NCBI GenBank assembly: GCA_000320545.1
Contig: ADNK01001115.1
Location: 3,584-67,583, forward strand
Source: Bigelowiella natans CCMP2755
Taxonomy: Eukaryota > Protista > Cercozoa
Direction: 5' to 3'
Length of the DNA stretch: 64,000 nt
Below are positions 41,427-51,054 of the stretch, one piece after another. The notes under the pieces were generated by a model. The model was not told where the DNA came from. It saw only the letters and a program-made list of their open reading frames with translations, and made no database searches. Made by a program: the position numbers and the translations under genes. The number at the start of each line of letters is the position of its first letter. Within the stretch, counting starts at the first letter, position 1.

Positions 41427-41791
41427 ATGAGCTTTTCAGGCGCTCCCCCCGCTGTCGGGGCTCCTCGGAACGGCAGGGGCCTGAATGCACCATCCCACCG
41501 AACATTTTTCGATGACCAGCAACTCCCTCCGAAAGAATCTGCTGTGGCGAAAGGGGAGGAGGCCCTCGTGGAGAATAGTAAGCCTATTCTCGAGTTTGTT
41601 CGGCGATCCATCGTTGGGAACTTTCAAGTGGTAAATGGCCCCTTTGGCCGTCGGAGGGTGCTGTATGCCGACTACGTTGCCTCTGGGAAGCCATTGCACT
41701 CAATCGAGGACTATATTCGAAAGGAGGTTTGTTTTATTCAATATATTTTCTCGTATGGTGATAACACCTTCAAACTCTCCCTCGCTCTCTC

Positions 41792-41830
<39 letters not shown>

Positions 41831-42181
41831 CCCCCTCTCTCTCTCTCTCTAGGTTATGCCAGTTTACGCCAATACGCATACGACGACATCTGTCACTGGA
41901 CTACAGAGCACCCTCTTTCGTGAGGAGGCGCGATCAATTGTTCATCGATGCGTTAGGGCGGGGAAAGATGACGCGATTATCTTCTGCGGCAGGTCCTTTG
42001 CCTGCAAACAAATGCGAGATCCTCTGCTCTCCACACTTTAGCCATATGTGAATCTAAGAAGGAAAGAGATGTGTAGAAAGAAGGAGGAGAATAATAATAA
42101 TAATAATAATAATAATGGGGAAGACGTAGCGGGAAGAGATAGAGCGAGTGAGAGAGAAACTGTGACTATTGAATTACGGAA

Positions 42182-42215
<34 letters not shown>

Positions 42216-42953
42216 TGCCTCTCAGCGGGGCAACTGGAGCGTTAAACCGCCTGGCGTCACTTGTCGGGTTGAAGAAGAAGGCCGAGCACCCACACGAGGC
42301 CCAGGCTAAAGATCGGTCGATGTGGCCTGTTGTGTTGGTGGGACCGTACGAACATCATTCCAACCTGCTACCATGGCGCGAGTGCATCTGCGTGATCGAG
42401 CAAGTGAAGGAGGACAGCGCCAATGGTGGTGTAGATATGCGTCATCTAGAAGAGGTTCTGCGTCGATTGCGACACGATGATGCGCGAAGCGTCGAAGGGG
42501 GGGCGGGCTCGAAAAGGAGGCTGATAATTGGCACGTTCAGCGCAGCCTCGAATGTGACAGGAATCCTCACTGATACGAGGAAAGTCACCGAGCTTTTGCA
42601 CAAATATGGTAGTAGTAGTAGTAGCAGCAGTAGTGGTCGTCGTCGTCGTCGTAGTAGTAGACGAAGGAGGAGGAGCTACAATGCGCCATGCTGTTGTTCC
42701 TAGTAGCTGAGACACTCCCATGCTTCTCTTCCTTTCGTCTGATCGATGTTGTTAAGAATGGAGATGATGACTTGCCTGCTGCCTCAAACAACAGGCAAGT
42801 TGTTCCTCCTGCTTCTTGTTTATCTGCAACAGAGAGCACGCATGCTCTGAGCCTCACATAACAACCACAAACAAACAAAGAAGCATACAAAATCACAAAC
42901 ACACAACGTCACACCACTTCCTGCATTCCGGGTGTCGTCTTGTCGCTAATACC

Positions 42954-42989
<36 letters not shown>

Positions 42990-43303
42990 GCTACCACGCA
43001 GGAGCTTTATCGTTCTGGGACTATGCGACAGCTGGGCCCTACGTCGATGTCGATATGCACCCAGGAGGGGCTCAAGGAAGCCAAGGGGGTGGGGGTGGCG
43101 CAGCCAAAGACGCGATTGTTCTCTCCACGCACAAGTTCCTTGGAGGTACTATACTACTACTACTACTACTGCTGCTGCTGCTGATACTACTACTACTACT
43201 ACTACTACTACTACAACTTCTACCCTGAAGCGAAACCCTCGATGATAGCGGCAGCAGCAGCAGCAGAAGAGATACGCATCAATATGAAACTTGTCAGGAC
43301 ACA

Positions 43304-43355
<52 letters not shown>

Positions 43356-43364
43356 TTCTCTCCC

Positions 43365-46904: not shown

Positions 46905-46954
<50 letters not shown>

Positions 46955-48944
46955 GCAATTACTCAGGGAAAGGCACGCGAGTGCCGTTCCTGCGATTGCA
47001 TCGATTTTGCCCCGCTGCTGCCCGACACTGTCCCGGCAATTGGTGTTGAAGGAGGGGGGGGAGGAGGAGGAGAGGTTGGAACCATAGCAATGATGGCTCC
47101 TACAAAGAGGAAACAACGGCCTTCACCCTCATCCCATCAAAACCCTCCTCATCATCGGAGCAATCCCAACAAACACTCACCAGCAGCCTCCCCCTCTTCG
47201 TCCTCAACCCCCTCCTCGTCGTCAGGACAAACCCAGCAGCAGCAAGCGGAAGGGAGGGGTGAGGGGAGTAAGAAGCGCAGGACTACCACGACGACGGCGA
47301 ACAACGGTGAGGAGGAGGAGGAGGAGGAGGAGGAGGGGATTATATGCGATATGATAATAGGAATGGACAATGATGCTTCTACTGAATAGAGTGATGGTGG
47401 TGGCAGTTGAAATAATGATAATTATGCCAATGACAATGATGATGGATGACAACGACAGCTACTCTGTACACTACTTGAGAAGCAATCGATTTCGTCGAGC
47501 ACCACGCGCCTTCACCACCACCACCTTCTGCAAGTAATAGCTCATATTTTCATTTTCCCGTATAAATTGAAAGGAGGAGGAGGAGGAGGAGGAGGAGATA
47601 TAAAAACAGCCGCATCATCGTCGAAGAACGGCCTCTTGAGCACCACCATCGCCGGTGGTAAGAACAAGTCTCGGATGAAGAGAATGAAGAAGATTCAGAA
47701 GGTGAGAGGAGATAGACGTCGTGCAGTGCTCCTGCTTAATAGTAGTAGTAGTAGTAGTAGTACTAGTGGTAGTAATAGCAGTAGTGGTAGTATCTCGATG
47801 AAGAATAAGACTTGCTGCTGCTACTGCTGCTGAAAAAGACAGCCATTCCTCTTCCAATCAAGCACTCGAACAACGATGAAGTTGATGTCACATCAACTTC
47901 ATCAGTTCACGCATACCGCCGTGATAGTCCTAAGAAGTACAATCTATCCTTCTTTTCCTTCTTCTTCTTCTTCTTCTTCTCCTTCTTCTTCTTCGCTATT
48001 ATTATCGGCATCATCCACAGAACATCGCGCGAGAAGTGGGGAAGGCCATCCAGGAGTTTCAAATGATACGGTGGGGGCATAGCAGCTGCTGCTGCTTCCC
48101 AATCAACGATGACGAATAGCCTGCATCTTGATCGGGGGCAGAGCACGACGTCATTTTGTTTTTCTATAACGTGCAACAAGAAGTCTGGGGGGGGGGGGGG
48201 GGGAGGGGGGTTGCAGCATGTACGAATGCCTTGTGCGGCATGACTCTATTCGTAGATGAATATAGGCTTTACTGCACATATGATGAACGATTGTACCGAT
48301 GGCTGCCTTTATGCGGTCGCTGGGGAAATCACCAATATAAATTCTTCAATCTGTCAATCTGATAATGTGCCTGGCCATGATTATGGACGGATATCTGTGT
48401 ATACCTGCTGCTCTGTTCAGCAGAAGGCTGATCGATGTGTGTGTGTGTGTCTGGAATGCGTGTGCGTGTAATATTGTTGTGGGGGCTGTTTCAGGGAGGG
48501 GGACCGTGTGCTGGTAGGCGTCTCTGGCGGCAAAGATTCACTGACGATGCTGGATGTTCTTTTGGACAAACAGGTCGGTACTTCTCTTCGTCGTCTCTTC
48601 CTTGGTAGCTGTGCTAGGTGTAGTAGTAGTAGTAGTAGTAGTAGTAGTACTTTGTAATAGTCATTTTGACGGAGAGGGGAGGGGCATATACTTCGATATC
48701 TCATCATTCTACACGGGTAGTAGTAGTAGCAATAGTTGTGGTAGCTGCAACCACAACATGGCAGCACCTCTTCTCGATTCTTAATCCCATCCATCACATC
48801 GCTAGCGAAAGGCACCAGTGCGGTTTGAAGTGGCGGCGTGTACCGTTGATCCTCAGGTCCGCGCGCATGTACGTGTGTGTGTGTGTGTGCGTGTGTGCGT
48901 GGCGTCGGTTCGGTAGTGACGTTTTACCTCGTTTCTTGACGATG

Positions 48945-48998
<54 letters not shown>

Positions 48999-49517
48999 AA
49001 AGCACATAAGCAGCAGACACGTCCTCCTCCTCCTCCTCCTCCTCTTCCTTCTGATTATCCTCCCCCCGCCGCCACCTTTCTCTCCTCCCGTAGGCCCCGG
49101 AATATGACCCCACCCCCCTGAAGGCTTACATGAAGAAAAAGGGAGTGAGGTAGTATGAAAGTGCATGTATGAGTACCCTTAGTGGCCAAAACAACAAGCA
49201 AACACACGCACGTATCACAATGACTCAGGTACTTTATGGAAAGCCAAAACGTCCTCGAAACGGCGAAGAAGCTCCTCGACCCAAGACGTAAGTATACTAG
49301 CGGCGAAGATGATGGTGGGGAGGGGGTGATGACGCGACGGCAGCGATGCGAGATGTGATGCACCCCTGAAGTTCCTCCTCCTCCTCCTCTTGTGAGACGA
49401 TAAGAGTGGAATATGAGCGATGAAAACAAGAGACATATGCATAGCGTGTATGCATGCATGTGTGCGTGTGTGCGTGCGTGTGTGCGTGCGTGTGTGCGTG
49501 TGTGTGTGCGTGTGTGC

Positions 49518-49562
<45 letters not shown>

Positions 49563-50141
49563 CAAAGTTTTCGTTGGAGCTGACCCCCCCTCTACTGCAC
49601 TTGTCAGGAGACTCTATTTGCTCCTTCTGCTCGCGCATGCGGCGTGGAATATTGTACAACACGGCGCGGAGGGAAGGCTACAATGTACTGGCGTTGGGAC
49701 AGGTGATGACCCAATTTGATGATGATGATGATGATGGCGGTGATAATGATGTTTCGCATGCAAACACATTCATACCTATTTATGCTGGACACCGTACACA
49801 ATCATGCCTTATCGTTCTGCCTTGATTACTTCTTGATCGATCCCTCCTGCCCCCCCCACCCCCCCGAAATTCGATACGTTCGCAGCATCTCGACGACCTC
49901 GCGGAGTCTTTCGTGATGTCAGCATTCCATAACGGCTCCCTGCGGACAATGAAGGCGCATTATGAAAACGATAAGGGGGACGTGAGGATCATCAGGCCTC
50001 TCGTGTATGTACGCGCATGCATTTTGTGTGCTCGGCTGGTTCTCTAGTTGCTGCAGTGTATATCTTTCATCTTGCATTCGATTAATATTTGTGTGGATGT
50101 GCGCATTATGAGTGCGATTGTGCAAATTGATAAATATTATA

Positions 50142-50212
<71 letters not shown>

Positions 50213-51054
50213 CGTGGTTAGATACGTCCGCGAAAGGCTAATGCGTGAGTATGCGACATTGGCCCGACTACCTGTAATTGATGAGAACTGTCCAGCATGC
50301 TTCGAGGTCTTAAAACTAGAAGAAGAAGAAGAAGAAGAATTATAGAATAAGAACAAGTAGTAGTAGCGGTGGCAGTAATACGGGCTGTACACACGAATAG
50401 AGACTGATACAGAGTACCAGATTGCTATCACGAAAGAGTCGTGTTGTGTTTCCATTGAGTATTCAATAAGGTCGTGTGTTTGTGTGTTGCGTGTGATTTT
50501 TTTTAATCATATGATCTCCGTTTGCCGTTGGGGTGTCGCATTGGTCACGACGACGACGACGACGATGATGATTATGATGATAGGCGCCAAAAGAGCGAGC
50601 GCGGGTGAAGCTAATGTTGGCGTCTCAAGAGCACGTACATCCCAACGTCTTTTCTTGCCTCCTGCGCACAATGAAGCCGCTCATGCGGGGGGATTTGGAG
50701 ACGAAACGGGGCGTGCACGCAGCTGCCATCAGATGCGGCGGCGGCCAAGGTAACGGGAGCCGTGATGGCAGTAATGGGATTCTTCACAGAAAACGCACAG
50801 ACATGAAATCATCGACGACTACGAGAACAAAGATGACCGCCATACCACCAGCTGCAGCAGAGGAAATGGAGTTTGATTTAATAGTGGGAGGACCCTCTGC
50901 AACATCTTCTTCTGATAAGAACGGCGATAGTATTGGTAGTGGCAAGGACAGTCATAACCCTTGGATTGATCGGGGGGAACGGATATGGGAGGTGGTGCAC
51001 GGCCAGCATAAAGGCGACTTCTGGGAGGCGTTGCAGCACCAGCTTACAATCTAA
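41427..51054 (+). CDS. Fusion of class-V aminotransferase/cysteine desulfurase-like domain and TtcA-type PP-loop tRNA thiolase, ~25 exons
   Basis: N-half: YADYVASG, YANTHT, GPYEHHSNLLPWRE, FSAASNVTG, WDYA, STHKFLGGPGTPG (PLP Lys), EEGGTP, LNDLFGVQARGGCACAGPY, LRWFMLPSE. C-half: VGVSGGKDSLTML, CSFCSRMRRG, LGQHLDDLAESF, IIRPL, ENCPACFE. Confidence 0.85.

Follow-up and report, generated by a model that had tools for sequence, protein, structure and literature searches.

A 26-exon gene of Bigelowiella natans that probably encodes a SufS-like cysteine desulfurase fused to a TtcA-type tRNA thiolase

We analyzed a 64,000-nucleotide stretch of the genome of the rhizarian alga Bigelowiella natans CCMP2755 (contig ADNK01001115.1; the whole stretch is called the window below) and found that positions 41427-51054 of its plus strand probably form a single gene of 26 coding exons, whose product of about 1263 amino acids would be the bifunctional rhizarian orthologue of a eukaryotic fusion between a CsdA/SufS-like cysteine desulfurase and the tRNA thiolase TtcA. 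The idea of such a fusion is not new. A preprint that appeared two months earlier (bioRxiv 10.64898/2026.09.27.754811, 28 September 2026) describes an RNA-seq-supported “IscS-TtcA” fusion of 1177 residues in Aplysia californica (LOC101861551), with orthologues in 28 molluscs and blastp matches in birds and insects, and reports 2-thiocytidine at position 32 (s2C32) of Aplysia tRNA-Lys(UUU), detected by liquid chromatography-tandem mass spectrometry. In the same preprint, blastp is reported to have found no TtcA homologue in Aplysia other than the fusion, the choice between a single fusion event and parallel fusions is left open, and the catalytic cysteine is given as “not identified,” which we attribute to the alignment of the domain with IscS. 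Beyond this mollusc work, we found no further description of the fusion in the literature searched, and the B. natans gene is a new, mis-annotated member of the family. The initial annotation of the window, which had proposed the fusion, also held that s2C32 is not a recognized eukaryotic modification; this statement is superseded by the Aplysia report, in which the modification occurs together with the same fusion (bioRxiv 10.64898/2026.09.27.754811).

Across the locus, the open reading path is continuous and canonically spliced, and spliced transcripts of two further chlorarachniophytes run colinear with it. A codon walk along the exon list yields 3792 nucleotides, corresponding to 1263 codons plus the stop, which run from the ATG (MSFSG) at 41427 to the stop codon at 51052-51054, the exact outer bounds that the initial annotation had named. 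When donors and acceptors were enumerated for each junction with phase checks, including those of the linker exons, whose phases had not all been checked in the initial annotation, all 25 introns were of the GT-AG type and the path stayed in frame, with the terminal stop as its only stop. The AG acceptor of exon 18, the first exon of the TtcA module, is preceded by a polypyrimidine tract, and the exon itself contains no in-frame ATG. Among the relatives, the transcript-derived protein P0350 from Chlorarachnion reptans (MMETSP0109, 1127 residues) is colinear with 41412-51036 over its residues 7-1123, and P0002 (894 residues), the closest fused relative, is colinear with 42260-50005, including the stretch between the two domains. 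There it matches SGEWVHRRL...RRW...ISY (45578-45655), GSMVYP... (45892-46068), LRWFMLPSEAA (46182-46235), LCRNCFHPHSMGK (ending at 46737), GKARECRSCDCIDFAP (beginning at 46967) and NIAREVGKAIQEFQMIR (at 48018). The exon path is also colinear with P0006, P0104, P0037, P0143, and P0087. P0002 is encoded by L006, a sequence of 2974 nucleotides (Joint Genome Institute [JGI] sample 3300017173) that carries a single open frame across both domains and intron-like remnants at its two ends: a polypyrimidine-CAG acceptor before SGATGA on the 5' side (1-207) and a GTAAGG donor after RPLV on the 3' side (2893-2974). Because one open frame is combined with intron remnants at the ends, we take L006 to be a spliced transcript over both domains; since its 5' remnant lies at the same border as that of B. 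natans exon 3, it further suggests that intron positions are conserved within chlorarachniophytes. Taken together, the in-frame path and the colinear transcripts of relatives bear out the proposal that one eukaryotic gene combines a desulfurase-like domain with a TtcA-type thiolase.

The first of the two modules is a class-V domain dependent on pyridoxal 5'-phosphate (PLP), with a SufS-like (group II) core that covers exons 1 to 11 (41427-45313, plus strand like all exons given here). It is distributed over exon 1 (41427-41726, opening with the start ATG), exon 2 (41853-41992), exon 3 (42226-42608, with EHHSN at 42350-42364), exon 4 (43002-43145, with the PLP lysine in STHK at 43124-43135), exon 5 (43449-43522), exon 6 (43698-43808), exon 7 (44070-44187), exon 8 (44388-44497, with RLPVFSFNI...), exon 9 (44681-44763, with the RGG of the catalytic loop at 44755-44763), exon 10 (44918-45065, with CACAGPY at 44919-44939) and exon 11 (45228-45313). 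STHK and EHHSN align with sghK and ehhaN of SufS, and a HMMER alignment of SufS with an orthologue of the fused protein pairs ehhaN with ehhsN, sgHK with spHK, eagtp with eagtp, and ragHHCaqp with raSCACagp. The last of these pairings places the second cysteine of CxCAGP on the catalytic cysteine of SufS, and we therefore regard it as the equivalent residue, encoded at 44925-44927 in the window. The H-H-S, H-K and C-x-C motifs are invariant across 42 fused proteins.

Family scans of the window were made on single exons or on natural orthologues. At the level of single exons, matches to Pfam models stay below threshold because the exons are too short (12-18 bits for Aminotran_5 and 18-21 bits for PP-loop), and exon 3 gives a weak SufS match in an NCBIfam scan. 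The JGI protein model from the locus, P0001 (jgi|Bigna1|38112), which has 542 residues, contains the desulfurase only and is 100% identical to the exon 3 query, reaches 108.9 bits on Aminotran_5, and the PLP module of the orthologues matches SufS structures with an E value of 1e-25. AlphaFold2 modeling of P0160, which is related to the Chlorarachnion protein, gave a mean predicted local distance difference test (pLDDT) score of 78 and a predicted template modeling (TM) score of 0.64; residues 1-606 of the model form one confident module with pLDDT values mostly above 90. In a Foldseek search, the best Protein Data Bank (PDB) matches of this desulfurase model are all SufS, with TM scores of 0.84-0.88 by target, and the model of this close relative thus shows a predicted SufS (group II desulfurase) fold for the N-terminal module. 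A search of the B. natans genome (91.4 Mb in 3736 contigs) for a desulfurase paralogue returned the fused-gene locus as its sole match.

The sequence between the catalytic loop and the second module is more than a linker, as its first 170 or so residues are shown by conservation and by the P0160 model to be a predicted folded extension of the desulfurase. They are encoded by exon 12 (45580-45656, with GEWVH at 45581-45595 and RRW at 45626-45634), exon 13 (45890-46068) and exon 14 (46176-46234, with LRWFMLPSEAA at 46191-46223), together spanning 45580-46234. Compared with P0002 and P0350, exons 12 and 14 are 77-81% identical and exon 13 about 40%. The extension motifs recur among 62 fused proteins (GEWxH in 51, R[RK]W in 58 and RWFxLP in 32), and the equivalent part of the P0160 model, residues 500-606 of its confident first module, has pLDDT values of 84-96.

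The second module, a TtcA-type PP-loop domain followed by a non-conserved C-terminal tail, extends over exons 18 to 26 (48021-51054). Its exons are exon 18 (48021-48070, with NIAREVGKAIQEFQMI at 48021-48068), exon 19 (48495-48573, with the PP-loop SGGKDS at 48523-48540), exon 20 (48806-48856), exon 21 (49094-49149), exon 22 (49229-49287), exon 23 (49608-49702, with CSFCSRMRRG at 49619-49648 and, within it, CSFC at 49619-49630), exon 24 (49886-50004), exon 25 (50222-50306, with CPAC at 50289-50300) and exon 26 (50584-51054, ending with the stop). Taken one by one, exons 19, 23, and 24 find their best family in the NCBIfam TtcA equivalog NF007972, with 30, 39, and 41 bits (E values from 3e-7 to 2e-10), and their matches fall in colinear order at model positions 39-62, 119-150, and 151-194, respectively. 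On the sister models, the orthologues score 37-56 bits (TtuA), about 30-41 bits (NcsA) and 58-66 bits (TilS N-domain). SGGKDS and CSFC do not vary among 42 fused proteins, and CPAC hardly does. In Escherichia coli TtcA, Cys122, Cys125, and Cys222 are the essential ligands of a [4Fe-4S] cluster (PMC4081106), and CSFC and CPAC provide equivalents of all three. In the P0160 model, residues 761-1009 form a confident TtcA module. As judged by its motifs and family matches, the C-terminal module is thus shown to be a predicted TtcA-type domain, with a PP-loop and the three [4Fe-4S]-ligating cysteines found in the E. coli enzyme. Targeted translations placed all the motifs of both modules that the initial annotation had listed (SxHK, RGGCACAGPY, SGGKDS, CSFCSRMRRG, and CPAC) on the plus strand at the positions named.

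The nearest bacterial counterparts of the fused TtcA domain are proteins of about 250 residues from Thiobacillaceae, Gallionellaceae, Hydrogenophilales, and Thermithiobacillus, to which it is 51-57% identical. These short TtcAs of sulfur-oxidizing beta- and gammaproteobacteria score 200-241 bits on NF007972, themselves below its cut-off, and the NCBI Prokaryotic Genome Annotation Pipeline often names them merely “ATP-binding protein.” Since the short protein is the sole TtcA homologue in each of the five proteobacterial genomes checked, the short TtcAs look like orthologues rather than paralogues. A bacterial operon that might have preceded the fusion was also sought, and none of 80 proteobacterial loci had a class-V aminotransferase within 5 kb of the TtcA homologue. 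B. natans itself has a second PP-loop gene, an uninterrupted open reading frame (ORF) of 390 residues at G000:C2996:18909-20081 (L001:1465-2637), which scores 128.8 bits against PF01171 and 49.7 against the TtcA model and could be of the TilS or the CTU1 type.

Between the two modules lies a linker encoded by exons 15 to 17 (46491-47701). It contains a zinc-finger-like pair of cysteine motifs, LCRNCFHPHSMGK at 46699-46737 in exon 15 (46491-46737) and GKARECRSCDCIDFAP at 46967-47014 in exon 16 (46967-47306), continues with low-complexity sequence rich in Ser, Pro, Gly, and Glu, and closes with a basic stretch that ends in KKIQK at 47701 (exon 17, 47574-47701). Two open frames in it, of 155 and 161 codons, exceed the length expected by chance. 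The pattern CxxCxH...CxxCxC, which matches no Pfam family, occurs in 13-14 of 62 fused proteins, among them those of chlorarachniophytes, P0002, P0160, and P0104 from Polysphondylium. In the P0160 model, the corresponding region (residues 607-760, about 150 residues) is predicted to be disordered, with pLDDT values around 30 and no confident fold for the cysteine motif, and the B. natans linker is considerably longer than this tether. Some fused proteins carry further domains, namely a C-terminal thioredoxin in P0167, a C-terminal rhodanese in P0209 and an HMG box inside the linker in P0184; an extra rhodanese or thioredoxin is as expected for a sulfur-relay enzyme. P0014 has cyclic-nucleotide-binding domains N-terminal to its desulfurase and lacks a TtcA domain; P0023, P0045, and P0112 are of similar length and group with it on the desulfurase tree.

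The initial annotation had also surmised that similar fusions exist in other eukaryotes, and more than 60 were retrieved (60-67 distinct fused proteins over all searches). When exon 3 (42224-42610) was searched against representatives of 50%-identity clusters, a search chosen because a word search misses proteins much longer than an exon-sized query, 15 of the 150 best representatives had an Aminotran_5 domain followed by a PP-loop/TtcA domain. A word search with the linker region of P0002 returned 73 proteins, nearly all with PF00266 and PF01171. The fused proteins come from Polysphondylium violaceum (Amoebozoa), Rhodelphis marinus, the stramenopiles Triparma pacifica and MAST-4, Chromosphaera perkinsii (Ichthyosporea) and, among animals, many insects, the crustacean Daphnia and the flatworms Fasciola and Paragonimus; some have been automatically named “tRNA 2-thiocytidine biosynthesis protein TtcA.” No fungal, plant or mammalian fusion was among the matches listed. 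Two domain trees were built, both unrooted, with a sampling biased to best hits and with many short rows that may be fragments. In the TtcA tree, 94 bacterial rows form a clade separate from all fused rows, and in the desulfurase tree 41 of 41 fused rows fall into one clan (support 97), apart from standalone and cyclic-nucleotide (cNMP)-domain-fused relatives. This pattern fits a single origin of the fusion without proving it.

Given these two modules, the fused protein may work as follows. The PLP domain would take sulfur off L-cysteine as a persulfide on the second cysteine of CxCAGP, and a flexible tether would bring the persulfide to the free (fourth) iron site of the TtcA cluster. C32 of selected tRNAs would then be adenylated with ATP by the TtcA domain and its O2 exchanged for sulfur, yielding s2C32. 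The Fe-S cluster and the reducing equivalents would be supplied by other machinery of the cell; the description of the system as “self-contained” in the initial annotation was overstated, because the three conserved ligand cysteines imply a [4Fe-4S] cluster that is supplied from elsewhere.

Several observations weigh against the view that the locus encodes one bifunctional desulfurase-thiolase. With regard to the gene, one junction, the only ambiguous one, allows several in-frame choices for the exon 16 donor and the exon 17 acceptor. No full-length, transcript-derived B. natans protein was found in the protein collections, and the continuity of the B. natans transcript is therefore inferred from the transcripts of relatives. 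With regard to function, the desulfurase and thiolase activities of the fused proteins are predicted, and the link between gene and s2C32 in Aplysia is a correlation only. The orthologues score 192-241 bits on NF007972, below its equivalog cut-off of 272, and 79-126 bits on the SufS model TIGR01979, below its cut-off of 475, which marks the PLP module as a distinct class-V family; the catalytic loop of the window, RGGCACAGP, also differs in sequence from the RxGHHCA of SufS. Group II desulfurases normally require an acceptor protein (SufE, SufU or CsdE), and no acceptor of this type was found within the fused protein.

The alternative that survives best, to which we give a minor but real share of the probability, is that the fusion exists and its chemistry is different: the PP-loop domain might thiolate another position, nucleoside or substrate, or the PLP domain might not be the desulfurase that feeds it and might act instead as a selenocysteine/cysteine lyase or in another pathway. 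The scores under both equivalog cut-offs and the atypical CxCAGP loop would agree with this, as would the membership of the fused TtcA in the short proteobacterial subfamily that often goes by “ATP-binding protein,” the existence of standalone members of the PLP family without TtcA, some of which have cNMP-binding domains instead, and the mapping of Aplysia s2C32 to tRNA-Lys(UUU), which is not one of the E. coli substrates. However, the short TtcA being the only homologue in five proteobacterial genomes makes it orthologue-like, the PP-loop and all three cluster cysteines are conserved, as are the cysteine at the SufS catalytic position and the PLP-site residues, and the fusion and s2C32 co-occur in Aplysia.

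That the locus instead holds two adjacent genes, a desulfurase-like gene ending at about 45.3-46.1 kb and a TtcA gene with a promoter and start codon of its own somewhere within 46-48 kb, is in our estimation very improbable. Such an arrangement is what P0001 depicts, as it holds the desulfurase alone and terminates with KIERY*; moreover, in-frame stops appear at 45318, 45662, and 46096 when donors are ignored, and an ATG at 45898 could in principle start a separate TtcA frame. However, the end of P0001 is a read-through of the GT donor at 45313/14, and the truncated model omits exons 12 to 14, among them the SGEWVHRRL...RRW exon that almost all family members retain. Every one of the stops lies directly past a phase-consistent donor, those at 45662-64 and 46096-98 following the GT donors at 45656/57 and 46068/69, respectively. 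Transcripts of the two related chlorarachniophytes cross the whole region in one frame, the domains are joined in more than 60 homologues from across the eukaryotes, and, as a weak test, a dispersed 3'-spacer element found after the true stop has no copy in the 45.6-48 kb between the domains. The claim that no terminal exon separates the two domains thus stands, as the in-frame stops sit past usable donors and the spacer element is absent there. Least probable of all is a polyprotein that is cleaved in the disordered linker and releases separate enzymes fused for co-expression alone, a possibility raised in the mollusc preprint (bioRxiv 10.64898/2026.09.27.754811) and in keeping with a linker that is poorly conserved and, over about 150 residues of the modeled relative, predicted to be disordered, but one that faces the lack of a conserved cleavage motif and the retention of the fusion across very distant eukaryotes, which would suggest an advantage of tethering.

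If the fused protein works as proposed, some eukaryotes own a second, Urm1-independent route of tRNA thiolation with a built-in sulfur donor, and s2C32 would be a widespread but patchy eukaryotic modification. To the mollusc preprint, the present analysis adds the occurrence of the fusion in at least four eukaryotic supergroups and the grouping of both domains on trees, which bear on the question of one origin versus parallel fusions. It also adds a candidate for the catalytic cysteine, which emerges once SufS rather than IscS serves as the alignment reference, and the finding that the nearest bacterial TtcAs belong to a short proteobacterial subfamily. It is tempting to speculate further, although we regard this wider scenario as doubtful, that the fusion dates from early eukaryotes and was lost repeatedly, that it provides an autonomous and probably cytosolic route from L-cysteine to s2C32 without recourse to mitochondrial NFS1, Tum1, Uba4, and Urm1 for carrying sulfur, and that the extension and, in some lineages, the zinc-finger-like, rhodanese, and thioredoxin parts serve as relay, reductant or tRNA-binding modules. 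The N-terminus showed no obvious signal peptide on inspection by eye.

The truncated catalogue model of the B. natans gene needs correction. In addition to its premature end, P0001 loses 12 residues of exon 3 (RLRHDDARSVEG), and in place of exon 8 it reads on from exon 7 into the following intron (ACVRAHCAVSMRDS...). The introns between 41.7 and 50.5 kb are rich in (CT)n, (GT)n, (TA)n and (TAC)n, (ATG)n, (GAG)n runs, and several of these repeats continue into coding sequence, where they encode poly-S, poly-E, and poly-G tracts, yielding many alternative in-frame GT donors. The dispersed element downstream of the fused gene is about 90 bp long and lies at 51216-51347, with copies at 13342-13433, 3673-3760, and 35880-36019 that are 73-86% identical; it also has an internal partner, inverted or direct, at 51260-51430. 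An uninterrupted ORF of 912 residues on the minus strand (52354-55092) runs toward the fused gene and converges on its 3' end; by eye it has the look of an SMC-family ATPase, with a C-terminal LSGGEK...DEID motif and an extended coiled coil.

Among known systems, the closest counterpart is the Aplysia fusion, which has the same layout of an N-terminal COG0520 CsdA-like PLP domain and a C-terminal TtcA-like domain, joined by a long linker of poor conservation. As compared through the description in the preprint rather than pairwise, the two also share the PLP lysine, the Cys-x-Cys pair and the C...CSFC...CPAC arrangement, and fusions from insects, flatworms, and crustaceans appear in the match lists alongside the chlorarachniophyte relatives. 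The B. natans protein differs in coming from a rhizarian alga, in its length of 1263 instead of 1177 residues, in its 26 exons and in the CxxCxH...CxxCxC motif that the linker has in its lineage. With E. coli TtcA (PMC4081106), the fused protein shares SGGKDS, a CxxC corresponding to Cys122/Cys125 and a second CxxC corresponding to Cys219/Cys222, and NF007972 is its best-scoring model. Unlike the E. coli enzyme, which works with separate IscS and IscU, it has the sulfur donor fused in cis and scores under the equivalog cut-off, and its TtcA domain is nearer to the TtcAs of about 250 residues from beta- and gammaproteobacterial sulfur oxidizers than to the 311-residue E. coli protein.

The desulfurase module resembles SufS and CsdA (PDB entries 5zsk, 1kmk, and 8d8s) in its predicted fold, in EHHxN, in the S-x-H-K PLP lysine, in EAGTP and in the position of the putative catalytic cysteine, whereas identity is only about 20-24% and the fused protein has the extension of about 170 residues with GEWxH, RRW, and LRWFxLPSEA. 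As a member of the superfamily of [4Fe-4S]-dependent PP-loop thiolases, the TtcA module is akin to Ncs6/CTU1, NcsA, and TtuA, with TtuA as the nearest solved relative of exon 23 by sequence. Unlike these Urm1/TtuB-dependent thiolases, it lacks the zinc fingers found at the termini in the TtuA group and implies no ubiquitin-like carrier; the sole extra cysteine motif of the fused protein lies in the linker, about 150 residues upstream of the TtcA domain. Two other systems, MOCOS/ABA3 (a NifS-like domain joined to MOSC) and ThiI (a rhodanese joined to a PP-loop domain), likewise tether a persulfide-forming domain to a sulfur-consuming one, and they differ from the fused gene in their partner domains and in their products, molybdenum cofactor sulfuration and 4-thiouridine at position 8 (s4U8), respectively.

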